A stretch of 64,000 bases of DNA. Origin: Trichoplax adhaerens (Eukaryota > Animalia > Placozoa). Location: NCBI RefSeq assembly GCF_000150275.1, contig NW_002060949.1:5365767-5429766 (forward strand). Direction: 5' to 3'. This document shows positions 30,601 to 64,000 of the stretch, piece by piece. Within the stretch, counting starts at the first letter, position 1. Every line of letters begins with the position of its first letter. A program made the position numbers and the translations under genes. The notes below the pieces were generated by a model. The model saw only the letters and a list, made by a program, of their open reading frames with translations. It ran no database searches and was not told the origin of the DNA.

Positions 30601-33600
30601 GTAATAAACGTAGTAGCAAAGTCAATATACAATTAAAAAAGCTCATAACAGATTGGCATAAAATTAATATAATCTTAAATTATCTGGTTGGAACATTGCA
30701 TAAAAATTAATTCTCTGATATTTTTTTTACGTATGCTAAAGCATAAACTGCTATTTTATCTGTGTTTACAGTTAAACTTACTAATATCGATGTATTTAGT
30801 TTCTAGCGGCGTGCCAATAGCATTACTTAAAATTAAAACGTACTAAATCAAGTACAAAATGTCATAGTATTATTGAAAGATGAATTTTAGTAGAAATTAC
30901 ATAAAAATGAATTAAAAGATACCTGACCACTACCATCAGGTGCTTTAGTGCTTATTAGACAGTAATCACCATATGCAGTTATACCCAAGAGATTTTTTAT
31001 ATATTTGACAATGCACTATTGAAAATCAAATGGAATGTGAAGATTAGAAATTGCGAAAACATCAATTTGAGGATACAAAAATAATTCTTATAATATTGAA
31101 TATACATGATCGTATTAGAGAATTACCGTACCTATCTTGATGATTTAGATAGAAATGACTTACCTCCTTATTTTTAGTTTCCCAGAAAACAACACTAGAA
31201 TCTTGTCGATCGGGTTTATTGAAGGCATATACTACCGTATTACCACAATAACCCCACTGGAAATATAATACAAGAAATATGTAATAAATATTTATACACT
31301 TAATATTAATCAAATAGCTTAATAGACAGTGTATTAGCAAATGAACCTTATAATCAGGCCGAATGTTAGCGAAATAAATATAGCTGTCAATAGCTAATGA
31401 CAGTCTTAAGCCATCACCATCCCAAGATAAATCGGCTAATTTCTTCCCTGGTATTCGTAATGTTCTCAAGTGCTATATTCAAATTAAATATTTATCCATT
31501 TAAAACACTTTTTCATCCAATTAATACGTATTAATTGAAATAAATTATATAAATTATTACATCTCCAAATGGGGTATAAAATAGTACAACATTTGTTTCC
31601 TTTTCCTGCATTAATATAAGAAAATAGTCAAAGTTAGCCATCTAAAAGACATTATTGGTATAAATAGAGCCAGGGAAGAACTTTTAGTCTAATAAACGAA
31701 AGTTTATATTTCTATAAGGTACCTGATTTTGTTGCAAACCACCTACAGCAAGAACAGAGCCAGTATGATTCCACTGAACAGTGGAGATAGACAAGCCAGT
31801 ATCAATGATAATCGGATCTTAGTTTAAAAATTTAAACGCATTGTTTTTATTGATTCCTGGTAATTAGGTTAAAAATTTTATATAGTCTTTAAATTTTTGT
31901 ATATACTTTCATCCGTTTCCGATTTCATTAGCTGCATCTTTCCATTATCATAACATGCAACAAGAGAATGACATTCTTGCTCTATATATCCTTCGGAACC
32001 ATTATACCTAATTTTCCATATTAATTTTCGATAAATAGTATTTATCCAACAGTAAGATCATTGAAAATTTCACCAAAAATATTTTGATGTTGTAACTTAT
32101 TACCAATTAAGACCAGCTATAACGCAAGAAGTATCCGAGCAGCAGTAATTAACTAGTTTAGACTAAGCAAGGAAAAAGTATATGTGTTAACATACTAAGC
32201 ATATATAGTGGAAAGATCCTTAATTAAGATATTATATGGAATGTATCATACTGTAAAATTTCCATTGTTGTCATAAATATGGATCTCTCCATTAACTAAG
32301 CCAAATAAAATGCTTTTTCCATCAGGTGACCACTAAAAAATCCAAGATTTATTCGGTTATAAACTGTAGACAAATTTGTAACGAATATAAAATCTTACGC
32401 TAATATATGATTATGAAAAGATATAAAGATTCTATATCATAAGACTAAAATGAATTTTCTATAACTATGAACACTTTACTTCGCACCTCAACCCATGAAA
32501 GCTGGATTTTTAGCTCTTTTCCCCAAATTCTGTTACCGTCAACTGAACCTACAATGACAGCACCTGTAAAATAATAAATATGTGAGATAACTATGTAATC
32601 ATTGTTATATTTTAATTCTGTAATTCTCAATTAGAGACAAGTTAAAACTTAATCTTACCATCTTCGTATATAATACAGATTTTCCCTCCATCGAAATTCC
32701 ACTTCATGTCTTTAACAACACTTTTATTGCGATTGTTAACCATTTCTTCATACCACTGGCCTGTAGATAGTTATTGAGTTATAATTTGTATAAATTTGTC
32801 TTAGCATGATAAAAAAATTATGTAAATGAAAGAAACTGTAATCTTGTGATTTCCAAGAATAATATGGATTTTAGATGTAATACTGAAATATAAAGTTATC
32901 GCTTCAACCTTTGTATAGTGTCCAAACAATAATTAACCCAAATTGATCGCTACTTGTCAGCTTCATATGTTCCATATTCCATACTACTACTTCTACTGAA
33001 CCTGAGAAGCGAAAAATTTACGTGAAGAATGTTTCACTTTTCAAGATACATATGTATACTGTATTAGTACTAGACAACATATCCAATTATAATAGTACTC
33101 TGTATTAGCTTTATTAACCTCCATGGCCTTCAAGTGTTTGATTCATGGACAAATTACTTGGTGCAGCTAATCCCTTAACTTTGTTATCTATTACGATAGA
33201 ATTAAAAATTATGTACGAAATAACTTTCGACTTACGGTATAATACGAATAAGAGAATGGTAAGAAGCAAAACAGAATGAACTCTTAATAAAATGTTGTAC
33301 GTTTGATCATTACCGGACTGTATATCCAATTTAAGGACCTTGAGTAATCCATCTTCGCCTCCACACGCAATGTATCCTTGTTCATGATTCCAGGATAAGC
33401 ATCGCAGATTTGTGTTGTTTGGAATGGCAATCTGCAATTAAATAGCATGAATATAAGCCAGTTCCTTAAGTAGCGCTTCAACTAGCGATTAATCGTGATA
33501 TACTCTTAAATGTAAAATTAAGAGATCATATCTAACATAAACATAAGATTATCCATAACTCTATACATCTTCGCTCTATTTTTTCTCTAAAACAACTTAT

Positions 33601-34316: not shown

Positions 34317-36220
34317 ATGGCCTACGTTCAGCTTGCAGCATTGGATACCTGCATAACCTCATCTGAAGATAATGCATGTGACTGGATGACTAATAAGATT
34401 GGAGGAAGACCGGTATTGATTTGATTTTATATCTATCTTATTTTATATATGAATTTTATCTACATGAAATGTTGAGATCAATGTCGAGTTAAATACTGAT
34501 ATCATACAGTTTCTATCTTCGCAATGCATTCATAAAATAAGTTGTCGTAATGATTAGTACTTCTGTATAGAACTAGATGGAGTTCTGAAACGAATGTCTT
34601 AAAGAATTTATTATATTATCTTTATTAAGTATAGAATAGCAAGTATCATTAATTTTAGCCCCTTCAAGGGGGTACAGCTGCGAATAGACTCTTTCAATCA
34701 TAATGATAGTTGTGCATTTGCATTTTTTACGAGTATATGCATTCTCTATAAAATTTTCTATGATCTGAAGAGAATACCAAGGATAATAATTATCTAATTG
34801 AAATTATCGTATTTTTTTATACGCACAAATTTTTTTAACTTTCGATATATAGAACTGGATGCATAATTCAAATCATCCTTCTTGCAAGTTGTGCAATAAA
34901 ACGCAAATGCTTATGGTTCAAATTTATTGCCCTCTTACTGGTTCCTCATATCACAGGACGTTATATCTATTTTCTTGTATTAATAAGGATTGCTGGAATA
35001 AATCAGACAGGCAAATATTGCAATGTACACTAATGTCATACGTTATGATAAGAATATTCACCAATTTTTCTAATGTTAATTACGTAAATCATATGAATTA
35101 TTATAGTTGGTCTATAATAAGATCACAAGTAGTGGAGATCAAACAAGATGTAGCAAAGACGAAAATCGAAAATTCCAGCAATATTTGGAGTTGTTCTGGT
35201 GATGATGATTGGAATGACGGGTAAAAGCTTAAGATGAGTGTACAAATAAACGTATAATACAGACACAATATGCCTTCAGTATGATTTAACTTTTTGAAAT
35301 TAAATTTCTAAACAGAAATGAAGGAGAACGTGAAAAAAATAATCTAGACATAGAAGCTGTGTTACGAGAAGATAATAAAGTAGATATGGAGACTGTTATA
35401 GAATCAGCAAATCAAGTATCTATTCATCATCAAAGAAATACGATAGCTGATGTTCCATTCATAACTCCGGTCATTCTTGTGGTATTTGATGAACCGAATA
35501 TTAGCCAAAAATCTTTCAAATATGAGCAAAAGTTACTACAGGCTTATGAACAGCAGCATGGTTAGTTTATCACCAAATGTACCATATCTTCTTCACGGAC
35601 GGATTTTCATAAACTCTAACCATTTTCTGTTGTTATTCTATTGTACATTGCTCGCTTTTTAGTAATTGGGATGCCCAGATATGTCATACTTCTCATTTCA
35701 TGTTATTAGGAGCCGTAACTGAACAAATTACTGATGATGAAGTTAAGATGGAGTTGTATGAGAAAACGTCCGCTAAACATGGCAATCGAACTTTTGAAAA
35801 ATTTATGAAGAGACTACAACGATATCCTAAGCAAGTTCTGAGGTAACAAATTAAGAAGTAAGCTGCTAACCGTAAAAGAATGAGTGTGCAGTATCGCGTT
35901 TAAATTTTAGATATATCTATTCGCTTTTATTATTTAGATACAATCGTGGTGGATCTCCCTTATTGATGACAGCAACCGAAACAGATATTATTGCTGTACC
36001 TGATTGTCCAAGGTGTAGCTCTAAGAGAGTATTTGAATTTCAGCTGATGCCAACTCTTATATATGAACTGAAAGAAATTAGTCCCTCATCATCCGTACCG
36101 GAGTTCGGTACTGTATTTGTCTATACATGTGACAACAGCTGTTGGAACGATGATAACCAACCTTACGAGGAATTTGTTTACCTGCAATCTGATCCACAGG
36201 AGAAAAATTTACCTTATTAA
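34317..36220 (+). CDS. PDCD2L: Programmed cell death 2-like protein (uS5 chaperone family, no MYND finger)
   Basis: NKIGGRP|NW...C..C...QIYCPL...YHRTLYLFSC; C-terminal domain PKQVLRYNRGG...CPRCSSKRVFEFQLMP...EFGTVFVYTC..SCW. Confidence 0.9.
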
Positions 36221-36605: not shown

Positions 36606-39600
36606 TTATTTCCTATTCGAGGATTTCCCTCGTTTGGAAGTATTCTTTGTTGAGCTTTGTTGTTTTGCCTTAGAAGCAGCTTTCTTTGATTTAATCATAG
36701 GATCAGATTCAATTTTAGTTTCTTCCTCTGTATTCTCGGTTTCTGCACTTTCTTCAGTTTCTTCATCTACTCCTTCATCGCTTACACGCTTAACTTTGCT
36801 CTGACTAGCGTAAGGCATTAGATGAGGCATTTTATTATATGCTCTGGAGAATGCAGATTTAACCTATTGTAAATAAAAAAGATAGCTATTGAATCCTGGG
36901 AAAGCTTGCGATTAGCTTTCAGATCGATTAAGACCGATAAAATTTGTAACAAAATATTTACAGAATGTACTTAATGATACGAAGCATACCTTGCTACTTA
37001 ATTTCGTAGTAGGATCCAGCCGGCCCGGATATAGCCCTATATCCATAATGTTGGACCAATCATCTCGAGTTAGAAAGTAAGCGTCCATGACGTCGATGAC
37101 GTCGGTTACTCCTTCACTTTCCTATAATAAAACGTTCAATTTTTAAAGTTAAAATGGGTGAAGATCTAAAGGGGAGTAATAAATAATCTAACCCTTTCAG
37201 TTAAAGGCCCAGATAGCAAGTAGCGTAATTGGGGGACATATTCCATACCCAGTTGAATATGATTAGCTGAACTCCTACGTGCCAAAAAATTCATCGTGTA
37301 AGAATTGTTTAGTCAAAAATTTATATTAATGAAGTAGTAGCGACGTTGTTTTCGAAAACTGTACCTTATCCTCATATGAAGTGCCAATTCCTGTAAAATT
37401 CGATCATACTTCCCTTGTCTAGAATTCTTGCCAAGCCACGATGGAAAGTCTATCCGACTGCCAAAATAACCTTGCATTGCTGCACCAGGTATAACACTTC
37501 CGAATGCTGCTAGTGTTGGTAATAGTCCCCATCGATTGGTTGAGTACAGTATTTTATTTACAAGATCTCCACAGGAAATTGAGTCAGCAGCTTCACTTAG
37601 TTGATCCAACGTTTTTTGTAGATCACCGCTAATATAACATCAACACATTATCAATACGTAAATCAAAATATGATGGATTAACGAAAACTAAGACGTTAAC
37701 TTTCCGTTAATAATCACGCTATGTACTTACTTGGATTTAACAGGGACGACGCGTGGATAATTCTCTTGTACAAATAAAGGCATTAAGGAATAATCGGTAA
37801 AAAAAAGCTCAGCTTTATCGTTATAGGTCATTTTGGATGCTTCAGAGCTTGAATCAAATACTTTACGAATAGCTTCAAATGGACCCTGGATAGTGGAAAA
37901 GGGGTTTTTTCATATAATTGTACGTCATTACGGAGGATGAAAATGTATATTTCTATACGGTATCTTACCAGTTTGATATTCTTCGTTTGTATTACTGCTT
38001 TGCTACTTTTACCCGAGGAATTAGCACACCACATATTAAGATTATGAATACTTTGACGAATATCTTGATTTGTTGCTGTCACAATTTGTTGAGCAATTTG
38101 TGGGGTGATTTTTACTCCTTCTTTAAATGCTATAGACATTAATGTACTACATATTTGTTCACTTCTAGGACGTTGAAATCTAAGGTCGAAGCAGTAGTTG
38201 GCTAGAGATCGAATCTTTGGATGATTTCTATCATTACACATGCAGATAATGGGTATCTTCGTCTTTTTGATGATTGATATTAATTCTTGCATTCCGCCTC
38301 TATCATCATTTCCGGACATTCCGTCAACTTCATCCATAACTAAAGCTAACCTTTTGCTTTTGTTGTTATTCATTGCAGTGAAACCAGCGATAGATTTATT
38401 ATTAAAAATTTCAGAGATTACAGCTTCTAGACCTTTTTTCCCTCTCGCATCGCTCGCATTTAGCTCTACAACGTCGTAATTGCATTCACGGCAAACTAAT
38501 AGAGCACTAGTGGTTTTTCCTATGCCAGGGGGACCGGATAGTAAGGCAGCTTTGAACGTAAATCCCATCTCACGACTTAAAACGTGCTTATGTGTTGCTG
38601 TACTATTATTTTCGTGCCATTTCTTCAACCATAACAGAAGTTTATTAACGCAACTTTTTGCACCTTGTTGGCCAACAATCGCTTTTATACTTGAAGGTTT
38701 ATATTTATCAACCCACATCTCGGTCACCGAGTTTGAAGACTTTTTAGATGCTGATTGTGTATTAAGATTTTCTGGCTTGATATTTGCTATCGAAGAAGAG
38801 CTGCTTTCAAAAGTATTCTCAGTCACATTTTTCTTCGTAGGTGTTATATTTGCAGTGGGCTTGCTATCTATGTTTTTGTCATCTCCGATACTAGTCTTCG
38901 GTGTGTTAACCTTTACAGGCGTCTTATTGACCGTTGTTTTCTTTTTGTCTGTTTTACTTGTTACTAATGGCTTGGCAGGCATAGTAGAAATGAGATCATA
39001 AAAACTATTTTCATCTAACTGTTTTGTACTAAAGTTTTTCGCTTTTTCCAATTTGGTTAATCCAGGGTCCCGTCCAACAACTAAGTAATTTGTTTTTTTA
39101 CTAATTGAGCCGGACACATTGACTTTACCACCAAGGCTTTGAATTAGTTCTATAGCGGTCTCTCTTTCAATGGTATCTAGAACACCAGTGATAACAAATA
39201 CCAATCCTGAGAGACAGTTTTCTTGACCCTAATATTAAATTTATGAATAAAAATTTAAAGTTAGCAGCACTTCTTTCCATTACTAAGTAATATAAAATGA
39301 ATTTTAAAGAAACGGTGAACAGACCTTTGGAATTTCTCTAGATCCAAGAGCCCGAGGTCCATCACGTGCAACAAAGTCACGATAAGCGGCTTTATTACCT
39401 AAATTTTTGGCACCAATGTTGGTTGCCTCAGGATCTGGTTTTTGACTAGTTTCGATTTTGGAACTGTTGGCATCTGGCTGATTTTTACGGGGTGTACTTT
39501 GTGATGTTTCTAGTGACAATTAGCATAGGATACTTTTATTGACATTTATTCCTATTAAGTTACACTAAACTATTTTAATATAGATTACCATTATTTAGTT

Positions 39601-45197: not shown

Positions 45198-48100
45198 ATG
45201 GGCCTATTATCCAACGGAACACCATTAACTTGGGATGAGATTAAAGAGTATGTTGCTTCTATTAAAAGCCAAGGAATTCGCCAGTTTATTGCAATCTATC
45301 ATCGATTGCTCAAGCGTCAAAATGACATGCTAAAATGGGGCGATGAGGTAAAAAAAAAATGATCTTGTTGGGATACAGATGTATACGATTCATGTCGTTA
45401 TTCTGCCACAAATGGAAATTGATAAAGTTTCATGATACTTTTATTCATCCAATGAAATAGATTCATTGGTATAAAATACACTGTAGTCTACACTTATCAT
45501 GGACGTAGCGTTTTGATAGTCATGGGTATATTAAGGTTACAAAACTGCTTGAAAATGGACTACCGGTAAAAGAAAACACGCGTATAGACTTGCATGCGGA
45601 TGATTCAGTCGAAAAATAGAACCCTCCTCCCCAACACACACTTCATCGTGATAGCGGAGAGTGGATCAGGATATCAACTTAACATACTTTACTGTAACTC
45701 AAATCAAACATTTCGTTAACGTTCATAGGAGTAATTAATATATTAATAATACTGTATGTATATATGTAAATGAAGATCGATCAAATTCCTATGCTATTGT
45801 TTTTTTGTACTTTAGCGGTTATCGCTCCATTGGATTGAGAATAAATTAATTTCCAGATTACGATAGTATTCTTGCCATATTTTAATTAATATCAAATAAG
45901 AATGGAGAGCATCATCTAGATTTAATACCCTCCATTAATTTAATTAATATATTAATCTCATACGCACGCTTAAATGAAGATCGCAGAAGTTCAATGACAT
46001 TGTTGTTTTTACCTTCTCGTTTATCGCCAATACTGTATTGTGTAGTCAGTCATGCAGATAGATGGATAAAATAATTCACCCACCCAATATACAGTACATA
46101 CAGTAGGTTGCAGCAATATTAGAGCAATAGTTTAGTATCCAATAATCCAATGCTGTAGACGCAAGATCGTACAGCCTTGATCTACATACAAAACTGCTCA
46201 TCAAATTGATTAAAAAAGAAAACTTGAGTCAATCGTGTATTAATTTGCACGTCCACTGTACAATAAATAAATTAAGAACAATAAACAATACGAATGGTAG
46301 AATCCGCTAGTAACACAATTGTATTCCTGTAACTATATTCTTATTGATCGCTTTTAAATGAAATTGTAGGATTGTTATCAACTTTTCTTTTATTACATCG
46401 TTTTTAAAATGTCTCTCAATTTTTTGCCCAAATTTGGTATCTTGTAGATTGAATATATGGTTGTTAAATTTGATCATAAAAATAATACTGCAAGATTGTA
46501 CTGCGAAGCCGATCAATATCTTGATGTATTACAAGAATTGGAAAGAGAAAATCCCAGGTAATGGATATTTTTCTATTAGCACGAATAATAAATACAGTTG
46601 ATTTGTGCAAATGTTCAATACATTATACAGTAAACCCCTTTCAAAGGTTGGACTATATGATGATTTTGATGTTGTACTGTATATTGATAAAAGTGTATGG
46701 AAGTACAGTACATACGTATCGCAGCAATTGTTAATATCACATATACTGCATTGAGGTAGAGAAAATTGCACGTTGCAGTTTTCATTAATTTTATTATCTC
46801 TGAATATTTTTCAACAAATTGAGTTGGCATACTTTAGCAGGTCATTTTTTTCCCACCTCTTCGAGCATTAGTGTTTATAGTAAAATGGAAGATAACGTAT
46901 ATAATGATATCTAAATTCGTAGTGATAATCGCCTATACTACAGTATTCAATAGGATGATATGGTATGTATTCGTATGTTGATGATAGTATGTAAATCACA
47001 TGTGTACTAATTTTTATTTTTGAATTTTTTTTTTATAACAAATCGGAAATGAGTTAATAAATATCAGTAGATCAATTTATCCTCGTACAGAGATAGATAC
47101 GAAATGATGTAATCTCTTCTAGTGTTTGTGGTTGTAGCAAAATATACTTCTGTCGAAATTTCTCAATAATGTTGGACTATTCGTCAGCTTCAGATCGTAA
47201 ATTGTATTGCTAATAGTAATCTAGCCTACTGTAGATATCATAGGTGTACAGTACTGTATCGTTAACTAATCAAGCATTGCATCATTAGTTGATTCTGTTT
47301 CAAGCTTGCTTTACATTATATTAAAGTGCTCAATTAACGATGTATTTCTACGCCTACCATAAATGTAGGTTAAGATGCAATGCTAGATTAAACTCGTATT
47401 CAACCATTTGCACAAAAAATTGTTTAATTATTTTCCGTTGCAATTATAATTTCTTTGACTATAGCTATTACTATCTTTATGCAATTGACAGCTTTACTCT
47501 TATTACGTTGAACGTTGTTAATCTCGCTATCTGTTTGATAGAAATTAATTCAATAATTGACGCATTTTTGTTACCTTACATAAATATATAAAATAGCGCC
47601 AATCCTACCGCGTGGAGACCGGAGTATGCTAGCTATATGCTGGAAGGTAATTTATCTAATTTATGGTACATCTGAGATGATAATATTCTAACATGTAGGC
47701 CGCCGTTAGTGTTTAGCATAGAACTGGAGTTGCTAAAGTCTATTATTGGATACTCAACAGCTTAATACGAAGCGTATCAGTACATAAGTTGATGTAGATA
47801 TCACCGTTTAAATGATATTGCACTTTTTTTTAATTTATTAGCTACACCTGGGCAACCGTATTTAAATGAGCTAACACAAATTAATACCGTTGAAGCTAAT
47901 ATGAAACGAAGACGTCGTGAAATTACCGAATTACTCCATGAAGATATTATCCCTATGACTCTAACTGCCTTTCCCAGGTCTTTTTTTGCTATCACAATAT
48001 TATATAATATACAGCCATATTTAATTAAGTAAATTTTTCTTAATGATTATCAAGGTATCAGATTGGCGGATTGATTTAGTAATCTTTGCTTAAACACTGT

Positions 48101-50801
48101 TTAATTAATTTATCATTCACTAGATTGGGTTGCCCAGATTTTACTCATCCTGTTTACAAACCTGACATAACTGAAAATTCTTCTTCTCGATCTCTCTTTT
48201 TCCCAGAGAAAGCTATTAACTCACACCCTCGGTTTAAGTAAGAAAGTCTAATTGTAGAAATGACTTTAATTTCGGCGAAGTAGAAGTTTTTATTTTTTTA
48301 AAATTAGGTACTTAACTCGAAATATACGTCTCCGTCGGGGATCTAAAATAGCTATCAATGTGCCAGGTAGATTTCGATAAATGTAGCATCGTACTTATTG
48401 ATTAGCTGAAGCAAAGCCCTATATCCCTGTTGATAATAACCATGTATTTTCAATAATTTCAGTGTTTCATGACGTTAATACTCCGAAACCTTTCGTAGAA
48501 CATCTCCAGTATGGTGAAGAGGCTGTTGATGGTAAAGAAGATCATATATACTTAGATGCAATGGGGCATGGTATGGGATGTTCTTGTCTGCAAGTATGTA
48601 AATGTTCAGAATATGTGAAAATGATGGATAATATAGTAGCCATTATCGTCCGCTATTCTTAATTTCTGTAAAATTTTTTAATCGTATCATTCATTCATTC
48701 ATGCTATTGACTAGGTGACATTCCAAGCTTGTAGTATTGATGAGGCTAGACTGTTGTATGATCAACTTTGTCCTATATGCCCAATTGTGGTAAATTAAAC
48801 ATTGCTGTAACTGATATACGGAAGAACACAAGAAAAGTTAATACATAAATATGATGGTCATATATTTATTTAATAATACTTTTGTAGTTGGCATTATCAG
48901 CTGCATCACCTATATATCGTGGCTTCTTGGCTGATGTAGATTGTAGATGGAATATCATTGTAGGTTCTGTCGATGATAGAACTAAAGAAGAACGCGGTTT
49001 AGAAGTAAGAACGAAGTCATATTTCTAAAATTATCTATCTTATGATCTTTCTTAATTAAACTACTACCGCAATATTGGATGATACTACAATTACTTATGT
49101 TGAATTTTTTCATTGCATATAATAGCCACTTAAAAATAACAAACATCGAATACCGAAGTCTCGATATGATTCTGTAGATTATTATCTGTGTCCAGAAGGA
49201 CAAGCGTATAACGACATTGAATTAGTTTACGATAAAGAATTTTGTGAGCAGCTAGAGAAGGCTGGTGTGGACTCAATATTAGCTCATCATGTTGCTCACT
49301 TATTTATCCGCGAACCTGTCTCGGTCTTCAAAGAATTACTAGAACAAGATGATGTAAAAGATTCCGATCACTTTGAGGTAATATTTTATAATAGACTACA
49401 GTTAAATAACACTGTATGATATCATATTAATATTAAGATAAATAATATATATTAAATGAGTATTAAAGATTATAGAAAGTAATCTAATTCTCAGGTCATA
49501 TAAATATAATGATTACAATATTTTAAGTGTACAGTACTTATTTTATATATATTTTTTACACCTTCGCTAGAATATACAATCTACAAATTGGCAAACGATG
49601 CGCTTTAAGCCTCCACCACCAAATTCTGATATCGGTTGGAGAGTAGAATTTAGACCATGTGAAGTAAGAAACTTAGATAAAATAGATAATGTAAACCAGT
49701 AAATAATAGAGTAGAAATAATTTTAACCTAAAAAAAAATAATTAATTCTATTTTAAACTCAAGGTTCAGCTAACGGAATTCGAGAATGCTGCTTTTGCAG
49801 CGTTTATTGTTTTACTAACCCGAGTTATCCTAACATATGGACTAAATTTTTATATGCCAATGTCAAAGGTAAAGTTATTATTACATCAATGAACTACTAG
49901 TAATTTTTCGTAGTCCATGCTACATCTTTTAACTGTTCCTAAATACTACTATACTGTCTCACTTCTTATCAATTGATCCAATTAATCGCCAAAAATGTAT
50001 TAAATGATAATTTAATCGATAGGTCGATGAAAATATGCAAACAGCACAAAAGAGAGATGCAGTTCGTAATGGCATGTTTTATTTCAGGAAAGATCTTGGA
50101 AAAGGTAAACGATTTCGAATTACGACATATTTAAATAAGTAATAATAGATTTATCATAATTATCATTGGAGATAATATTAATAGAGATACCTTTCTGAAA
50201 TAACATCTAGCACCATCAACTAGTAGCCCACCAGACGAAAGCGAATATGAACTTATGTCGATTAATACGATTATTAACGGGAAGGTATGTCGATTTCAGT
50301 CAGATTGGTTATAGTAGTAATTACAAACTAGTATTTTCGTTAATAGAGTAATAAATATAAAATTTTGAACATATTTTACAGGCTGACGGCTTTCCTGGTC
50401 TTGTTCCTTTGATAAATGACTATTTGGCTAGTTTATCTATTGATTTTAACACTCGGTGCTCATTATATAGATATTTATCGTTAATTCAAAAGAGAGCTTC
50501 TGGTTAGTTATGGGATAATAATTATTATTATTTATTTTATATATAAATTATGTACTAAGTATCTTGAATTAATTTGGATTTATTTATATATTATATTATA
50601 GGTGAGCTAAAGACAACAGCTAAGTGGATGAGAGATTTTGTAGCTAGTCATCCGGACTATAAAAAAGATTCTGTCGTCTCTGAAAAGATTAATTACGATT
50701 TACTGTACGCGTGTAACGAAATAGTACAGGGCAAACGTCAAGAATCAGATTTTATTGACAATATGGAATCGAAAACTATAGATAGTTTTTCTACTACATA
50801 A
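45198..50801 (+). CDS. GCLC: Glutamate-cysteine ligase catalytic subunit, copy 1 (canonical)
   Basis: [18 protein letters not shown]|[70 protein letters not shown] and [10 protein letters not shown]. Confidence 0.96.
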
Positions 50802-51714
50802 GAAAGAAATTCATAGTAAAACGGGTACAAGCAAATCATATATTGATTTGTATTGGGATGGTTCTCGCTTAACTAGAGAACAAGTTTTTATAGATCACGA
50901 TAATATATAGAAAGCTACGATACTTATAGTAATAACCATTATGCTATACATGTTTTTATATTTACATTATACCGTTGAGTTATGAGGTAACTTTTAATAG
51001 CTTATACAAAATGTTATAAGACTATTATATTGATATTATCATTTACTCATTGTGTTCATCGATTTTACAGTAGCTAGCAAAAAGTAATATCTTCTAAAGT
51101 TACAGTTACGTAACTTTATTTTGCATTATATATCGTCGGTAACAATCAATACATTGTTACTTTCATTTTATTATAATATTAATTATCTTCATGTACTCAT
51201 ACGTATTATTGCAAATTTACACAGTACATTTGAAATCGTACCTTTATTGTTAATTTAGATTTAGTATTGATTACATATACGTATATCTTCGTACTATAAG
51301 TTGCTCAGCTCGTATTTAGCCGTTGAAAATCTCAGGAGTATACGCTCGTATCTACTTTTCCGTAATATATCTTTCTTTGCTTAGTATTGCCTATTACGTG
51401 TTAATCTTAACGTCTGTAGGATATATACTCGTATATTAGATTGCTGTCTAGTGTCCATTATAGTCATATAATGTTTTAATTTACTAATGCTTAGTGATTT
51501 ATAATTAGCGTTTTTTACAATGAATGGATGTCACCTTATTAAATTACCACTTCAATATAAGTCAGTAAAAACTGAAATTTCAATAGTTAGGAATGTTGAA
51601 AATTAATGGTGAGATGATAGTATTAATAATGAATTAAATCGTTAAGGGCATTTAACTTTTATTATTACATTATGTTTGAAATAAGGATTATAGATGCATA
51701 AATGCTCTAGCATG

Positions 51715-52415
51715 TGTGTAACTCCACAAGATTAAATTGTAGCTGAAGTCATCCTGCCATATGCAGTTAACTACATACTATCACTTAAACGAAACTATGG
51801 TAGTATTACCCAATTTTTCAGTGAATATAATACACTCAGATCGCTTATTCTTAAGCAAATCGTTGGCTGTTGCTCTAACTACGTAGGTATAGTTAGCCTT
51901 CAACGGTGTTGTCTGAGCGTAACTACACAAAATGATATTATAGTTAAGTTCTGTCACATGCAGTTAGCTGCACATTAGCTATCACTTAAGCGTAATATCC
52001 TATATTCTATTGCATGCCACAGTCGCTTTTAAATTACTTATTCTTAAGCTGATCGATACCTGTTGCTATAACTAAGTAGGAACAGTTAATCATCAAGGGC
52101 TCTAATGTGACTGTAGCTACACAAGATGAACTAGCAGTTGAACTCATTCTATCGTATGCTGCCACCAGTTAGTTAAGAACCAGCCATCACTTGGGGTTAA
52201 TAAAACAATAAATGTATAAATCGATACCCATCGGCATTTAATATATATGTTATAGAACATTCATTCTATAATTATATAATTAAAGTTATAATAGCTATGG
52301 TTGGAGCTAGAGCTATTCATTCTTATCATTTTTATCAACAATCTTAGAAATGTCGATGTTTCGGCTTAAAATTGGATGAGCGATAGTCGCTTTGACTTGA
52401 TGGTGGTGTAACACT
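51715..52415. pseudogene. Duplicated relic of the RFC1 exon 1/intron 1 region, carried by the GCLC duplication
   Basis: Similar to 43025-43415 (TCATCCTGCCATATGCAG, TTCTTAAGCTGATCG..CCTGTTGCTATA, TTCATTCTATAATTA, TGACTTGATG). The minus-strand ATG is kept at 52329-52327 but the donor GT has become AT. Confidence 0.7.
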
Positions 52416-52712
52416 AGATTAAATTGATTCGCTACGGGTTCGTTAATTGTGAATTTGTGATTGGTTAGAGAGAAGCACTCGCTTAGGTAATCACTAACAA
52501 AGGGAATAGTTCTCTATCGTAAGCGTATGGCACTTATTGGTAGTGCTTTAGACATTTTTTATCGGTTGTATGGATTTAGTTTCTTTATTTCTTGAATAAA
52601 ATAGGGAATGGCACTGTATTTAAATCGGCACCTAAAAGATAACTTTTATACCTGGCAGAGTAAAAGCCTTTATCGAGTTCAATACCCTATAATGACAATA
52701 TTTGGTTTTGAT

Positions 52713-52997
52713 GCAGTGTAAACTGGACGCATATAACGTATTTAGTACGAAAAATGATCAAAAAATGAATAAATCACAGCTATAAAAGAATAAGATACAA
52801 GATTAAAAGCTTGCTACTTTGAACAGAATAGTATTATAGTATATTCTGATAAGGCAGTGTAAAGTAAATCCGTATAATATATTTAATTCGAAAAATGATC
52901 AAAAAATAAATAAGTCACAGCTATAAGGCAATAAAACGCTAGGCTAAAAGCTTGCTGCTTTAAACGGATTAATTTTATAGTATATTCTAATGAGGCT
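52713..52997. repeat. Tandem duplication, unit about 140 bp
   Basis: GCAGTGTAAA...CGAAAAATGATCAAAAAAT...CACAGCTATAA...AAAAGCTTGCT...TATAGTATATTCT occurs twice. Confidence 0.85.
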
Positions 52998-54006
52998 TTG
53001 TCATTAATTTCTACTGCGTAATGCGATGTAGTTTTGATAGCAATTGTGCAACAATAGGTTTCGATTGTCATATACAACAGTAAAAAGCCACATTGTGCCT
53101 AATAGCCACCGGCACTTTGCAATTATATTCATCAGTACAGGACTTTAGCAATATACATGCATTATTGTTATAAAACTACTTAAGGCTAATATGTAATACA
53201 AAAGCTGACCATGTACTGCAAGTAGACTGGGTTTTGAAATTGGAATGGAGGTTGATTGGAAAGGATGATTAGTAATTATGATGTAAATAATAATCTTAAG
53301 TCTTACCAAAGGTACTGGTTACTTCATTCTATCAATAACATAAATCTGTCGGATAACAAATTTACATTCGGATATTAGTTTAGCACAAGTGTCGGAGGGT
53401 CGATCAAATTATATCTTACCTGACTTGTACATCGTTGTTGCACCCCAGGCATTTATCTTTATACAACCTATACGAGCCTAAACGTCTAGACTTGGATTTA
53501 AAATAATAAGCGCACAGAGCAACAGTTTTATCAAATATAAACACAGTTGTTATTGTGTGGAACTGACTGCTTTATTTCGTATCAATCTTCAAAACTTGTT
53601 GTGTCTGTTTCTATAGAGAGCTAGATAATAGGCTGACAAATTCAATCTAGGTTAGTATACACTTTCTTACTTGTATTTATATATTTGGTTCATATATCCT
53701 ATTGTATACACTAAGGCATATTTTTATTATTCCCTTGGGTCTCTCCGACCTAATTCAATATTTATTTCTAGTGTAGAATCACTAAAATACCATGTAGCAG
53801 TCTAATCGGGCTGCGCCATAATGCTTGTTCTCTACTCTCTGTAAAATCAGTGACTAGAGTTTAAATTAGTCAACGCCTCCTAAGCCTGTAGAAGTTCTGC
53901 ATCGGACTGGATCGATAACATTGCTTGATACGTACATTCTATCGTATAGAACATTAAAATTGAACTTGAACGTGAAAAGCCGTAGTAGATTTAGTTTAAA
54001 AATAAG

Positions 54007-57000
54007 ATGGGTATATTAACTAACGGAACACCCTTAACTTGGGATGAAATTAAAGAGTATATAACTCTTATTAAAAGTCAAGGAATTCGCCAGTTTATTT
54101 CACTTTATCATCGATTATCAAACCGTCCAAATGACATATTAAAATGGGGCGATGAGGTAAAATTATATTATTGATACAGGCGTATGGTAATGGATTAATA
54201 TTTAATTATTCTTTAAGATTTTATAATACTCTTATCGATGGAATGAAATGGATTGATGGTTAATTACAGCACTTTGATGTCTCTTGCTGTAAACGGTACT
54301 TATGTAAAACAAGTAGAACATCGATTTTTATAGATTTCCCACAGTTTAAATTGTAAAATATCCCATTTCACACTGCAAAAGAATCATGTATCAGGATGCT
54401 GTACAAATTACTAACTGAAATCAAACAGTTATCTAGCGTTAACATCATTAATTAATAGTGTAGTGAAATGAAATATGTAGAAATCAAGCTACAAAACTTC
54501 TAACAAACTTTGATTCTACTTTCTTGGCACTCTGGTAGACTTAACGAAACTTTGACATCAAATAAAAATTGAAGAAACAACCGATTAACAATTTATTAAG
54601 AAAACGTGAGAGAGACAGGTCAAACAACCTTCCAAATACTTAATTCTAAGTATTATAAGTAAAGAAATAAAAAAAAGCGACAGAACTGAAAGTATCAACA
54701 ACCCAACAAAAAGAAGAACTTTTTCACTTACAACAGTTCGACCCCGAAGGCCTTTAAAATTCAACAAGTTCTTTAAAAGAATCTTCTTTTACTCTCTACT
54801 CTAAATTTTCTGATTGCACTATTATTTATAAGCTTCGCAGAGCCCTCAGTGGTATTTAAAACTAAACATTTATTAAGTAATCACTCTTAAGATCCATTTT
54901 AGAGAACTACTTTGTACCACTTAGGAAACAAAATCATTCAAAGTTCAGACACAATTTACCTTATGATTCCCTTACAAAACACTATAAAACCAACAAATTA
55001 ACTATAAAATACATCAAGCTTCACTTCTAACATAATTCTTAATCATTCATACATTATAAAAGTCTAAAAATTAACCTTTAAACATCAAGATTTAGTCATA
55101 AAAATAACAGTCTAACTACTTAACAATCAACACAACCTCTGCTATTTGCCATCTTATTTTCTATTTTCTGAGCTAAACTTTCCTAATATAACTTTCATGT
55201 CACGTCATAAAATTTCAAAGTTTCAAATTCACAACAAAAAGTTCAAATTTCAAAAATCAACTCTTACAACATTTTCCAAAAATTAAAATCCAAAAATTAG
55301 TGGATAGATAATCAATGGATTACAGTAATAATTTAGCAACATCCAGTATCAAATGTTCTATACATAGTATCGTCTCATTGGCGTTTTATATAGTCGTAAC
55401 CGAAGCCAAACATTTACTAAATGTTAATTTTAATAAATAAATTAATGTTATCTGTAAATAATGATCGAGAAAATTTAAGGTCACTATTATTACTGTAATG
55501 GGTAACTATACGCGTACATATTAGCCTGCGTTAACAGGTAGATAAATAGATAGATAATCAATATAATACAGTAGCGTTTTAGCAACAACTAATATCAAAC
55601 AATCTACTATATATACAATGTCATTCATAAGAGCATTACCAATTCATGACGCTGTCTCAACTGATATTAAAACATTTCAGTTAACCTTTAACATCATCGA
55701 TTAATTGATGAACGTCGTAAGTAAATAAAGATTGAGAAAGTCCACGATCATAATCTATTATACAGAATATCATTCATGACAACCTAATCGCAACGGTCTA
55801 TCTAAACAAAGAGAACAGTTGTCAATTATCAGTTGTGTATCAATTTGCTTGATTTTAGTCATCTAATTTTATTTAATATACAATTACTTAATCTAATAAA
55901 ATATACTGATGATTGTAGTCCACTAGTAACGCAATAGTATTACCGTAATTACGATCACAGTTAAATTAAATTATTCTATTGTTATCAATTTTCTTCATTA
56001 TATCGTTTTGAAAGTCTGCTATTTTTTTCAATTTGATATTGTCTTGTAGCTGGAATACATGGTTGTCAAATTTGATCACGAAAATAAAACTGCAAGACTG
56101 TACTGTGAGGTCGATCAATATCTTGATATATTACAAAACTTCGAAAGAGAAAATCCCGGGTAATGCATATTCTTCTGCTAATTGTATCATATAGTTTATT
56201 TGTATAAATATTAAATGTACTATGGAACTAGTCAAAAATTATGATCATATGATGATAAATATTCATAGTAAATAAGTAATACATGTCTCAACATTGAATT
56301 GTTGATGTTACATACTGAAAGATACAAAAATTTAGATATTGCGCTTACATTATCACTGAATATTTTATAACAGATTAAAAATAATTAAATAAACATTACT
56401 AGATATTTTGTCCATTTCAAACGATAAATAGGAAACGATGCAATCTTTTCTAGCCTTAGCGATTACAGTAACATGAAAATGAACTAATAAACACTAGTAG
56501 ATATATTACGCAACGTAATAGATAGATGAGAGAAGACGGAATCTCTTTCAGACTTGATAATGATAAACAAAATATAAAACAAGATGTAATTATAACAAAA
56601 TTCGTCTAGTAATCGCCTATTCCTCATTGCGCTCTTGTCAACGCCCTTTACAACATAAACTGTATTCTTAACGCCAATCCAATATACTATAATGTCAGCT
56701 AATCAAATATTGCATCATTAATCGATTCTATTCTAAACTTACTCTTCACATCACAATAGTGTATTAAATCAACCGTAGGATCAATACTTACTATAAGTAT
56801 AAGCTAAGATGTAATGCAAGATTAAACTATTCAAGCCCTAATCACATAAAATTTACATCAATATCTTACTACAATAATAATTCGATCTTTCTATGATTGA
56901 AAGTTTATTTTAAATGGATATGATTATTAACCTCAACATTATTTAATTGGTTGAAACTGATTGAAAAAGTTAACTCATTTTTATTACTTTACTTAATATT

Positions 57001-60000
57001 AAAATAGCGCCAGTCCTACCTCATGGAAGCCTGAGTTTACTAGTTATATGTTGGAAGGTGATAATTTAATTTATGCTACATCTAAGATGACTTATTCTAA
57101 CATATTGGGCATCAATCAATGTTAAGCATAGACAAGAATAAGAACAAGAACAAGAAAAGCCAAAGTCTATCTTTGGAAGATGCATAGTTCAATGCAAAAT
57201 GTGCATATGAAACTAACGATGTCATTTCTCCCTTTTTAATTCTTAGCTTCACCAGGACAACCATATTTAGGTGATTTAGCACAAATCAATAGCGTTGAAG
57301 CTAATATGAAGCGAAGACGTCGTGAAGTTATTGATTTGCTTGATGAAGACATTGTACCTATTACTCTAACTGCCTTTCCCAGGTCTCTTCAAACTATTGT
57401 ATTGCAATACGCATGTAATTATATTTAAAATTGTTTTCTTAGTGATTATTCATAAAAGTATATCAAGCTGGATCTCAAATACTAATTGATTAATTTGTTA
57501 TGAATTAGGTTGGGTTGTCCAAATTTTACATATCCTGCTTACGAACCTGATACAAATAAGAGGTCTTCAGCTCCATCTCTCTTTTTTCCGTGGGAGGTTG
57601 TTGGCTCACATCCTCGATTTAAGTAAGAAAGTAATTGTAGAATTATGGAATTGATCTTAAATTCGGTGAAGAAGAACTTTTACTTTCTTAAATTAGGTCC
57701 TTTTCTCAAAATATATATCTCCGTCGGGGATCTAAAGTAGCTATCAATGTACCGGGTAAATTTCAATAAAAATATATCGTACTTTTTGATTAGTTCAGGC
57801 AAAATCCCCACTATACGTTGATAATAAACGTGATTTTTCAAATTTCAGTATTCCGTGACGTCAATACACCAAAACCTTTCGTAGAACATCTCCAATATGG
57901 CGAAGAGGCTATTGATGGCAAAGAAGATCACATATATTTAGATGCAACAGGACATGGACATGGCAACTCTTGTCTGCAGGTAGTAAATACTCGTATCTAG
58001 TTATGTAGATTAATGAAAAGTATTGTAGCTACTATTCATTTCGGTATCTTTTTTAATCAACGTTATTTACTGATTTATGGTACTAACTAGGTGACTCTCC
58101 AGGCTTACAATGTTGATGAGGCAAGACTGTTATATGATCAACTTTGTCCTATATGCCCAATTGTGGTAAAATATTGAAAAATTAAATTTGCTATTGGTGA
58201 TATACTCATAAACATAGGTAATCATGTGCACGTAAAATTAAGAATGATAGTCATGTATTACTTAATAATATATTTATAGTTGGCATTATCAGCTGCATCG
58301 CCTATATATCGTGGCTTCTTGTCTGATGTAGATTGTAGATGGAATATCATTTCGCAATCCGTTGATGATAGAACTAAAGAAGAACGCGGTTTAGAAGTAA
58401 GAACAAAGTCATATTTTTAAAAATATCTTATCGGCTTATCATAATTAAAAAAACAACTGTAATATTGAGTGATACCATAATTACTTATATTGAATTTTTT
58501 TATTGCATATAATAGCCACTTAAAAATAATAAACATCGAATACCGAAATCTCGATATGATTCTGTAGACTATTATCTGTCTCCAGAAGGACAAGCGTATA
58601 ACGATATTGAATTAGTTTACGATAAAGAATTTTGTGAACAGCTAGAGAAGGCTGGCGTGGACTCAATATTAGCTCGTCATATTGCTCATTTATTTATCCG
58701 GGAGCCTATATCAGTCTTTAAAGAATTACTAGAACAAGATGATTTAAAAGATTCAGATCACTTTGAGGTAATAATTCATAATAAAGTAAAATAGCACTTT
58801 ATAAGATCATATTAAGTTTAAGATAAATAATGTATGCATATTAAGATTATTATAGCGAATAATCTAATTCTTACGTCGTATAAATAATGATAATTATAAC
58901 ATTATAACTGTACAGTACTTATTTTATGTATTTTTTACACCTTCGCTAGAATATACAATCTACAAATTGGCAAACGATGCGCTTTAAGCCTCCGCCGCTA
59001 GATGCTGATATTGGTTGGAGAGTAGAATTCAGACCGTGTGAAGTAAGTAATTTAGATAGACAAATAGTATAAACTAGTAATTGGTAGAGTGAAGTTAATT
59101 TCAATCTAAAAGGGGAGTTAGATAATTAATTCTATTTTAAACTCAAGGTTCAGCTAACGGAATTCGAGAATGCTGCTTTTGCAGCGTTTATCATATTACT
59201 GACTCGAGTAATTCTAACATATGGACTAAATTTTTATATGCCAATATCAAAGGTAAAGTGAATACTAAATCTTTTTTAAGTGTTCCTAAATACTATTGTA
59301 CTGTCTCACTTCTTATCAGTAGATGTAATTAATTGAACGTGAAAATGTATCGAACGATTTGATCTAATCGATAGGTCGATGAAAATATGCAAACAGCACA
59401 AAAGAGAGATGCAGTTCGTAATGGCATGTTTTATTTCAGGAAAGATCTTGGAAAAGGTAAACGATTTCGAATTACGACATATTTAAATAAGTAATAATAG
59501 ATTTATCATAATTATCATTGGAGATAATATTAATAGAGATACCTTTCTGAAATAACATCTAGCACCATCAACTAGTAGCCCACCAGACGAAAGCGAATAT
59601 GAACTTATGTCGATTAATACGATTATTAACGGGAAGGTATGTCGATTTCAGTCAGATTGGTTATAGTAGTAATTACAAACTAGTATTTTCGTTAATAGAG
59701 TAATAAATATAAAATTTTGAACATATTTTACAGGCTGACGGCTTTCCTGGTCTTGTTCCTTTGATAAATGACTATTTGGCTAGTTTATCTATTGATGTTG
59801 ATACTCGGTACTCATTATATAGATATTTATCGTTAATTCAAAAGAGAGCTTCTGGTTAGTTATGGGATAATAATTATTATTATTTATTTTATATATAAAT
59901 TATGTACTAAGTATCTTGAATTAATTTGGATTTATTTATGTATTATATTATAGGCGAGCTAAAGACAACAGCTAAGTGGATGAGAGATTTTGTAGCTAGT

Positions 60001-60153
60001 CATCCGGACTATAAAAAAGATTCTGTCGTCTCTGAAAAGATTAATTACGATTTACTGTACGCGTGTAACGAAATAGTACAGGGCAAACGTCAAGAATCAG
60101 ATTTTATTGACAATATGGAATCGAAAACTATAGATAGTTTTTCTACTACATAA
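54007..60153 (+). CDS. GCLC: Glutamate-cysteine ligase catalytic subunit, copy 2 (divergent substrate pocket)
   Basis: Same exon structure as copy 1; no stop or frameshift seen in the exons read. [27 protein letters not shown] and [20 protein letters not shown]. Confidence 0.93.
54490..55299. mobile_element. A/C-skewed insertion in GCLC copy 2 intron 1; dispersed repeat
   Basis: No counterpart in copy 1 intron 1; 55042-55299 matches the reverse complement of 61218-61472. Confidence 0.6.
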
Positions 60154-61217
60154 GAAAGAAATTCATAGTAAAACGAGTACAAGCAAATCATATATTGATT
60201 TGTATTGGGATGATTCTCGCTTAACTAGAGAACAAGTTTTTATAGACCACGATAATATATAGAAAGCTACGATACTTATAGTAATAACCATTATGCTATA
60301 CATGTTTTTATATTTACATTATACCGTTGAGTTATGAGGTAACTTTTAATAGCTTATACAAAATGTTATAAGACTATTATATTGATATTATCATTTACTC
60401 ATTGTGTTCATCGATTTTACAGTAGCTAGCAAAAAGTAATATCTTCTAAAGTTACAGTTACGTAACTTTATTTTGCATTATATATCGTCGGTAACAATCA
60501 ATACATTGTTACTTTCATTTTATTATAATATTAATTATCTTCATGTACTCATACGTATTATTGCAAAATTATAAAGAATGAAGTTGCAATTGTGTAACTT
60601 AACTTACGTTATGTATCGTGGTGATAATATGTTGTTATTTTCATTTTATTATGATATTAATTGTAGTAAAGGACTAAAAATTAGAGTCCTTTGTAGCTTT
60701 TAGTATGCAATATTATTTTACTATAGAAAATACCTAGAAAGTGATAGTGTCTTTAAGTTTTACCCTGCCAAATCATCATGTCGCCATCTTTTCTTCTTCA
60801 TTATTTTACAAGGTATTATATAGATTACTATAGAAATTGTCCGAGAGCAATTGCCTAACCTAAAGAAAGGGGGTTTGATCGTCTATTCAAATTGTAAAGG
60901 AATTTGACTTAGTAACAAAACCCTATCCTTAGAGAAAGGGGATTTATGACATGACGGTAAAGTACTGTAATGTAGTCTATAATCGTAGAGTTACCGTACA
61001 ATCTGACGCTAAAACATCAACTGTCAATACTCGCGAATACTCAGCGATACTAATGTCAGAAAAGTAGTCGTAATAGTCATATAAATTTTTTTGATAAGCG
61101 GTTACTGTGATCTTTATAAAAACCGCATTTTTCGGATTCGGATTCCGGAACCGGTCGGATTTATGTCCGATATAATTTTCCTGTTTTAATTTATGTCTGA
61201 TATAATTTTTTCTGTTG

Positions 61218-61472
61218 TAATTTTTGGATTTTAGTTTATGAAAAATATCGTGAGTTGATTTTTGAAATTTGAACTTTTTGTTATGAATTTGAAACTTTGG
61301 AATTTTATGACGTGACTTGAAAGTCACATTAGGAAAGTTTAGTTAGAAAAATAGAAAATAAGGTGGAAATTGGCAGAGGTTGTATTGATTGTTAAGTAGT
61401 TAGAATGTTATTTTTATGACTAAATCTTGATGTTTAAAGGTTGATTTTTAGACTTGTATAGTGTATTAATGA
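61218..61472 (-). repeat. Inverted copy of the dispersed repeat at 55042-55299; runs into the N gap
   Basis: The reverse complement reads ...AACCTTTAAACATCAAGATTTAGTCATAAAAATAAC...GTCACGTCATAAAAT...AAAAAGTTCAAATTTCAAAAATCAACTC...AAAATCCAAAAATTA, as in 55042-55299. Confidence 0.85.
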
Positions 61473-61473
61473 T

Positions 61474-63383: not shown

Positions 63384-63760
63384 ATGTTTTATGCTCATTT
63401 AATCTTATCTAAGAAAGGCCCTTTGGCCAAGGTATGGTTAGCTGCTCATTGGGATAAGAAGTTAACCAAAGCTCAAATTTACGAAGCGGATGTCAAATCA
63501 TCTGTAGATAGTATTAAATCACCTCAAGTCAAGATGGCACTCAGAACAAGTGGTCATCTCTTGCTAGGTGTAGTACGTATCTATTCACGCAAAGCCAAGT
63601 ACTTATTGACCGATTGTAGCGATGCATTTGTCAAGATTAAAATGGCCTTTAGGCCAGGTGTTAACGTCGATTTACCAAAGGATAGTGAAGAAGCAGCTGC
63701 CAACGCTGTGACCTTACCTGAAGTTTTCCATGATTTCAACCTTTTAGATGGCAATCAAAG
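63384..63760 (+). CDS. RAD21: Cohesin kleisin RAD21, first coding exon; the gene continues past the window
   Basis: [30 protein letters not shown]...[25 protein letters not shown]; likely donor AG|GTACAA at 63761. Confidence 0.95.
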
Positions 63761-64000
63761 GTACAACAGTTCATCTTTAATCGGATAACACGAATAGCTA
63801 CAACGGATAAGAATAAACTTAAAATTAGGCTAGACTCGATTTAAAAAAAAAAAATGGATGCAATCAGTCAACTTTTGTCCAAATGTTGAAAATGTCCTCA
63901 CTACACATTACAACTGCCATTTTCTGTTGAAAATACTCAATACAGTATGAAGAAAATCTCACCCTATTCTTACCATATTCAATCATTTTTAGTTGAAAAT

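Follow-up and report, generated by a model that had tools for sequence, protein, structure and literature searches.

A tandem paralog of GCLC in Trichoplax adhaerens has an intact catalytic core and an altered acceptor region

The stretch of DNA analysed here (the window) comprises 64,000 nucleotides of the placozoan Trichoplax adhaerens (contig NW_002060949.1, positions 5,365,767 to 5,429,766; coordinates below count from the first letter of the window). It is AT-rich, contains a tandem duplication whose period, as judged from a self-comparison, is about 9.4 kb, and encodes two copies of the glutamate-cysteine ligase GCLC, which are the only two GCLC loci of the genome (105.6-Mb assembly, 1414 contigs). 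The second of them, copy 2, is a real, expressed, and selectively maintained paralog in which the catalytic core is intact and the acceptor region is specifically altered. The models that we derived from the window coordinates give both genes the same architecture, with 16 exons, introns that are all of the GT-AG type, and a coding sequence of 1869 nt for 622 amino acids, and neither model contains stop codons or coding indels. The two proteins are 87% identical and differ at 81 residues. The genes and their exons are:

45198..50801, forward strand: GCLC copy 1, the canonical comparator, 16 exons, 622 amino acids
45198-45347, 46448-46557, 47597-47646, 47842-47977, 48124-48237, 48308-48366, 48463-48593, 48715-48789, 48888-49004, 49126-49377, 49571-49663, 49764-49868, 50023-50104, 50211-50284, 50382-50502, 50602-50801, forward strand: exons of copy 1
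54007..60153, forward strand: GCLC copy 2, whole gene, 16 exons, 622 amino acids
54007-54156, 56050-56159, 57008-57057, 57247-57382, 57509-57622, 57697-57755, 57849-57979, 58091-58165, 58280-58396, 58516-58767, 58950-59042, 59148-59252, 59375-59456, 59563-59636, 59734-59854, 59954-60153, forward strand: exons of copy 2

A preliminary description of this DNA had proposed that the interval 57008-58110, which corresponds to exons 3 to 8 of copy 2, encodes the remodelled cysteine pocket of a candidate new gamma-glutamyl ligase. Public records contain two counterparts of copy 2, TRIADDRAFT_27782 of T. adhaerens (P0285) and RDD36149.1 of Trichoplax sp. H2 (P0270). The former is a model of 630 amino acids that departs from ours at two splice choices (57979-58091 and 59456-59563). 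Its extra Val after Gln250 and its read-through into intron 13 are contradicted by the joints seen in RNA and by the H2 annotation, and we favour the model of 622 amino acids.

The cysteine side chain in yeast glutamate-cysteine ligase (GCL, encoded by Gsh1) is held in a pocket that we take to be lined by Y97, F197, L200, I204, M258, M262, and W445. When a GCLC is aligned to Gsh1 (chain 3ig5_A), these seven identities are found at precisely these numbers, which makes it very unlikely that the list was invented, and their placozoan equivalents are residues 97, 186, 189, 193, 240, 244, and 405. Four of the seven are changed in copy 2 (Y to F, L to F, M to T, and M to H) against none in copy 1, exactly as the preliminary description had it. 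The individual substitutions that it listed are likewise all where it had placed them, according to the gene models and codon checks, and are given here with the segments in which they lie:

57036-57038, forward strand: Y97F, in exon 3, TAT to TTT
57591-57593, forward strand: E177W, two base changes, codon checked
57701-57703, forward strand: L189F, codon checked
57716-57718, forward strand: R194Y, two base changes, codon checked
57947-57949, forward strand: M240T, codon checked
57959-57961, forward strand: M244H, ATG to CAT, all three bases changed
57965-57967, forward strand: C246N, codon checked
58097-58099, forward strand: F253L, codon checked
58106-58108, forward strand: C256Y, codon checked
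57008..57057, forward strand: exon 3 of copy 2, which carries Y97F and keeps Glu96 (57033-57035, magnesium- and acceptor-anchoring) and Glu103
57509..57755, forward strand: first hot segment, residues 177-194 (exons 5 and 6 with intron 5), with E/D177W, K178E, A179V, I180V, N181G, Y188S, L189F, T190S, R191Q, and R194Y
57849..58165, forward strand: second hot segment, residues 240-258 (exons 7 and 8 with intron 7), with M240T, M244H, C246N, F253L, and C256Y, and with Gln250 kept
58950..59042, forward strand: exon 11 of copy 2, which keeps Trp405 (58968-58970, yeast W445) and the Glu424 and Arg426 of the VEFR motif

The first hot segment turns EKAIN into WEVVG and KYLTRNIR into KSFSQNIY, leaving F186 and I193 unchanged, and the equivalents of yeast D188 and R205 are W and Y, respectively, in copy 2. 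The motifs GDExE, PExxxYMLE, CLQ, SRY, NWQ, and VEFR are kept, as had been noted, and this is true of both copies. The literature supports part of the pocket list: the cysteine moiety makes hydrogen bonds with Glu96 and Trp445 of yeast GCL (PMC5613772, Table 3), and simulations put Met322 of the Leishmania enzyme in the substrate pocket (PMC5613772). Since Met322 sits six residues before the conserved Gln, it is the equivalent of yeast Met262. The list of the preliminary description stands for the identities and numbers of its residues, and its assignment to the pocket is corroborated in part, through Trp445 and Met262.

Two departures at highly conserved columns are common to both copies, F242H (within MGFGMG) and G104A (right after the magnesium-binding Glu103). 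Their codons in copy 2 are:

57057/57247-57248, forward strand: residue 104, codon across the junction of exons 3 and 4
57953-57955, forward strand: residue 242

With these departures next to the active site, the canonical Trichoplax enzyme is itself slightly unusual. It is because F242H is shared by the two placozoan copies that copy 2 reads GHGHG.

To place these changes in the variation of the family, we used a comparison set of 159 GCLCs, in which alignment columns were ranked by conservation (at least 98%, at least 95%, and at least 90%). All 85 columns of the first class are kept by both copies. At columns that are at least 95% conserved, the only departures private to copy 2 are L189F, M240T, and M244H (yeast L200, M258, and M262), and all three are on the list of pocket residues of the preliminary description. 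The 90% level adds L3I, T105S, D177W, R194Y, and F253L. Copy 2 alone is changed at 21 of 373 conserved columns overall and at four of the seven pocket sites (hypergeometric P = 2.4e-4, in a post hoc test), and half of its changes at conserved sites fall in residues 177-194 and 240-258. As far as alignment positions can tell, the cysteine pocket is therefore not conserved in copy 2, with four of its seven residues changed, three of them at columns of at least 95% conservation.

The comparison of the two genes reveals contrasting histories along their length. Over the 5' two-thirds the DNA of the copies is 60-80% identical, and this ends in a tract of near identity:

59360..60440, forward strand: 3' tract of copy 2; identity of 98-100% with copy 1 (at about 50010-51090), which extends to the introns and the 3' flank

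The fact that 98-100% identity extends to introns argues for gene conversion, and the exons of the pocket lie outside the converted tract. In the unconverted part, the synonymous divergence (dS) between copies is about 0.4-0.5, and the pairwise ratio of non-synonymous to synonymous rates (dN/dS) is 0.26 over the first 314 codons and 0.10 over codons 315-464. The introns between exons 3 and 12 differ at 26% of the sites and have accumulated 29 indel events in 1053 aligned nt, whereas exons 3-12 differ at 13% of the sites and have no indel in 1132 nt, when about 31 would be expected at the rate of the introns (P ~3e-14). The low dN/dS and the lack of indels in exons indicate that both reading frames have been maintained by selection. 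The dN/dS exceeds one only across residues 177-194, where it is 1.31 (13 non-synonymous against 3 synonymous changes), and it is 0.05 across residues 195-239. Relative to the 159 other GCLCs, derived residues number 29 in copy 2 and 12 in copy 1 (p = 0.01). In the maximum-likelihood tree the two are sisters, with branch lengths of 0.114 for copy 2 and 0.056 for copy 1, so that the duplication is specific to placozoans and copy 2 has evolved about twice as fast.

A fast-evolving duplicate may simply be redundant. Under relaxed selection copy 2 would be heading to decay, its pocket changes would be early loss-of-function hits, and conversion would keep part of the gene intact. This would account for the 2 to 2.4 times more derived changes in copy 2 than in copy 1, for the radical changes at conserved sites, and for a conversion tract that spans the 3' third. 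It accords poorly with an unconverted 5' two-thirds that has no stop, frameshift, or loss of a splice site, despite a dS of about 0.4 and frequent indels in introns, with a dN/dS well below 1 outside two short segments, with the conservation of all 85 near-invariant columns, and with the splicing and expression of copy 2 in three studies under two organism labels. We regard this scenario as improbable. More generally, copy 2 is unlikely to be a decaying duplicate or a pseudogene: it shows none of the expected stops, frameshifts, or lost splice sites, it is transcribed, and its dN/dS is not near 1. The earlier impression that copy 2 is intact holds for the entire gene, all its splice sites being GT-AG, and the question of neutral evolution that had been raised is answered by purifying selection overall (dN/dS of 0.10-0.26).

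Evidence for transcription comes from the contigs of four public runs (X4, X5, X6, and X7, of which X5 is a declared RNA-seq library) mapped to 54000-59990. In X5, X6, and X7, which come from three studies and carry two organism labels, each of the 15 introns of copy 2 is seen spliced as GT..AG, and these spliced transcripts provide the confirmation of expression that had been called for. One contig of 1052 nt crosses introns 1 to 7 of copy 2 with zero mismatches, its six listed pieces covering exons 1, 2, 4, 5, and 7. Run X4 behaves like DNA, since it has no joints and covers introns. The alternative letters found in exons 10-15 are copy-1 bases at 32 of 33 places, which means that copy 1 is expressed too; the contig depths of the two copies are of the same order, depth being a poor measure.

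Within exon 15 of copy 2, an island of four bases (59797-59811) gives V538, D539, and Y542 where the H2 ortholog agrees with copy 1 in reading F, N, and C. The third of these residues corresponds to human Cys553, which forms the intersubunit disulfide with GCLM, and it is Tyr542 in copy 2 of the window but Cys in H2. Within the island all four runs match copy 1 alone, and so give Cys-type letters at this residue, although the rarer of two branches can be lost in contigs. The four-base difference may be peculiar to the reference assembly or to the strain behind it.

The fold of copy 2 is that of its family. The H2 protein matches the Pfam profile PF03074 (GCS) with 573.3 bits (cutoff 25) over profile positions 1-372 of 372, and its AlphaFold2 model has a mean pLDDT of 91.8 and a pTM of 0.93. 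The top Foldseek match of this model is yeast GCL (3ig5; E 4.6e-57, TM 0.87/0.81), and the model contains a confident helix at 184-197 that carries residues 186, 189, and 193. A search of the PDB with exon 7 of copy 2 alone gave no match. The residues of the metal, glutamate, and ATP sites are kept, namely Glu50, Glu52, Glu96, Glu103, Gln250, the Tyr of SRY, Trp405, Glu424, and Arg426. Their preservation bears on the idea that copy 2 now serves copy 1 as a non-catalytic or regulatory partner, either a pseudoenzyme or the subunit of a heteromer. The altered acceptor site and the Tyr at the equivalent of Cys553 in the reference assembly are indirect arguments for such a role; against it, every one of these residues is in place, the ortholog in H2 does not have the Cys-to-Tyr change, and the binding of copy 1 to copy 2 has no support. 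We think this very improbable.

Comparisons with characterised systems help delimit what has changed. Yeast Gsh1 (PDB 3ig5, 3ig8, 3lvv, and 3lvw) and animal GCLC (PF03074) have the same fold as copy 2 (TM 0.87, 40% identity) and have in common with it the magnesium, glutamate, and ATP residues, as well as the acceptor anchors Glu96 and Trp445; they differ in that L200, M258, and M262, found in at least 95% of the 159 GCLCs, have given way to F, T, and H in copy 2. Copy 1, its sister, has the same 16-exon structure and length and retains all seven pocket residues. More distant structural matches, at 7-14% identity, include the 1-naphthylamine GS (PDB 8x6z and 8wwu) and the carboxylate-amine ligase YbdK (1r8g). 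Going by the titles of these entries and by general knowledge, the ligases of the glutamine-synthetase fold belong to the same superfamily and use the same chemistry, in which an acyl-phosphate made at the expense of ATP is captured by an amine. They would serve by analogy only, as a precedent for a shift of acceptor specificity within the fold.

Replacement of the pocket methionines has also occurred elsewhere. The GCLC-like proteins of Mytilus galloprovincialis/edulis (P0054), Tachypleus tridentatus (P0130), and Oppiella nova (P0071) match PF03074 and have replaced both methionines (by L/A, T/T, and N/A, respectively), so that Tachypleus has M258T in common with copy 2. These proteins make a separate long-branch clade that is unrelated to the placozoan duplication, and they depart at 13-22 conserved columns against 9 for copy 2. 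The members of this clade in the databases include P0054, P0130/P0300, and P0071/P0290, all with both methionines replaced, and the same is seen in the unnamed transcript family P0035 and in Tulasnella. The statement of the preliminary description that animal GCLC is usually single-copy must accordingly be softened, as these paralogs of Mytilus, Tachypleus, and Oppiella show that it is not strictly so. A literature search on GCLC paralogs returned nothing relevant and no known function for the proteins of these three genera, and the genomic context of the Mytilus GCLC-like locus was uninformative.

Orthologs of copy 2 in other placozoans, which the preliminary description had proposed to look for, were found in Trichoplax sp. 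H2. Its protein is identical to our model at 619 of 622 residues and has the same pocket. Distant placozoans yielded none: a representative search gave no match above 63% identity, a homolog search with the spider protein P0006 gave arthropods only and one with the open reading frame of exon 7 gave no candidate, a profile built from spider GCLCs and the full set of exons led back to the H2 and H1 proteins alone, and a metagenome scan returned two unrelated GCLs at 44-48% identity. The 4278 nt of introns compared between H1 and H2 contain one difference and have no power as a test of selection. The 3.2-kb spacer between the two genes (50802-54006) has about 25 single-nucleotide differences and an 11-bp indel between the H1 window and H2 contig L003, against one difference in the 4.3 kb of copy-2 introns.

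The surroundings of the pair are made of ordinary housekeeping genes:

7581-7865, reverse strand: neighbouring exon, match to prolyl oligopeptidase
24613-33437, reverse strand: neighbouring exons, match to IFT121/WDR35
35876-36217, forward strand: neighbouring exon, match to the C-terminal domain of PDCD2
37831-39228, reverse strand: neighbouring exons, match to RFC1 (BRCT plus AAA)
63384-63785, forward strand: neighbouring exon, match to the N-terminus of Rad21/Rec8

Intron 1 is about 800 bp longer in copy 2 than in copy 1. A repeat of 258 bp occurs within it (55042-55299) and again, inverted, downstream of the gene (61218-61473), with 90% identity between the two occurrences. The very deep pile-up of contigs from the RNA runs over 54600-55200 suggests a dispersed and transcribed repeat. 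Downstream of copy 2 there are also two runs of N, which are assembly gaps, at about 61.47-61.53 kb and 62.58-63.15 kb.

What might copy 2 do? The proposal of a new ligase is plausible, and the reading that best fits the evidence, to which we give about an even chance, is that copy 2 has changed its acceptor preference away from cysteine, or its feedback by glutathione, or both. Copy 2 retains the complete set of residues with which the family binds Mg-ATP and activates glutamate, together with Glu96 and Trp405, which anchor the acceptor by its backbone. It would still form gamma-glutamyl phosphate and would still ligate this intermediate to an alpha-amino acid. From the two anchors we infer that such an acceptor continues to be gripped through its backbone and that the environment of its side chain is different. 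The residues predicted to make up this environment have been rebuilt by L189F, M240T, M244H, and Y97F, with D/E177W and R194Y as neighbours, and the GHGHG stretch that results is more polar and has two histidines. Glutathione presumably occupies the same pocket, so the sensitivity of copy 2 to it may have changed as well. Copy 1 probably stays the ordinary enzyme of glutathione synthesis.

The main rival to this reading is that copy 2 is still an ordinary glutamate-cysteine ligase in which the pocket changes are tolerated or compensate each other, the two copies being kept for dosage or for differential expression across cell types or conditions. It would fit the intact catalytic core, the expression of both copies at contig depths of the same order (a poor measure), the existence of Y97F, replacements of R205, and N246 in GCLCs with no sign of changed function, and a 3' third held identical to copy 1 by gene conversion. 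GCL also tolerates many acceptors (PMC10741565). Less easily accommodated are the facts that copy 2 departs privately at just three columns of at least 95% conservation among the 159 GCLCs, by L189F, M240T, and M244H, that its changes are concentrated in two short stretches, of which one has a dN/dS of 1.31, and that copy 2 evolves significantly faster than copy 1. We see this explanation as possible, with the odds against it.

A number of arguments weigh against a changed acceptor preference or feedback and must be kept in mind. First, the pocket list is only partly corroborated, and its positions were judged by sequence. Second, F at position 97 is common in ordinary GCLCs (37 of 159), N is found at position 246 in 10 of 159, and R205 is replaced in Caenorhabditis brenneri (P0105), among others; as these changes occur in other GCLCs, only L189F, M240T, M244H, and D/E177W are really unusual. 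Third, the faster rate of copy 2 and a dN/dS of roughly 0.3 in its lineage also fit a partial relaxation of constraint. Fourth, the only ortholog found, that of H2, is 99.6% identical in DNA and thus too close to speak for long-term conservation of the new pocket residues. Fifth, altered kinetics with cysteine or altered feedback by glutathione would fit the same data as a new acceptor specificity, and in a naturally promiscuous enzyme the pocket changes may only tune kinetics. The same promiscuity has another side: GCL accepts many amino acids besides cysteine, 2-aminobutyrate being a good substrate (PMC10741565 and bioRxiv 10.1101/2020.05.29.123802), and this broad tolerance makes a shift of preference chemically easy. 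A bolder version of the proposal makes copy 2 an animal gamma-glutamyl-amino-acid ligase dedicated to a non-glutathione gamma-glutamyl dipeptide, whose acceptor would be polar or charged, as the new Thr/His/His pocket would favour. We hold this to be rather unlikely on present grounds.

Our analysis concerns an enzyme that is treated as the single, invariant, and rate-limiting step of glutathione synthesis in animals. The peculiarity of copy 2 is invisible in databases, as the H2 protein and the UniRef entry for the T. adhaerens protein are named simply glutamate-cysteine ligase and the NCBI entries of T. adhaerens are unnamed. If the proposed change of acceptor is true, copy 2 would be a natural experiment on how this fold sets acceptor specificity, and also a possible source of new gamma-glutamyl compounds in an early-branching animal. 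Under the bolder version, that of a dedicated ligase, molluscs and chelicerates may have arrived independently at a similar innovation with their pocket-altered GCLC-like proteins, and the compound made by copy 2 might act as a metabolite or as an extracellular signal in an animal that has no neurons.

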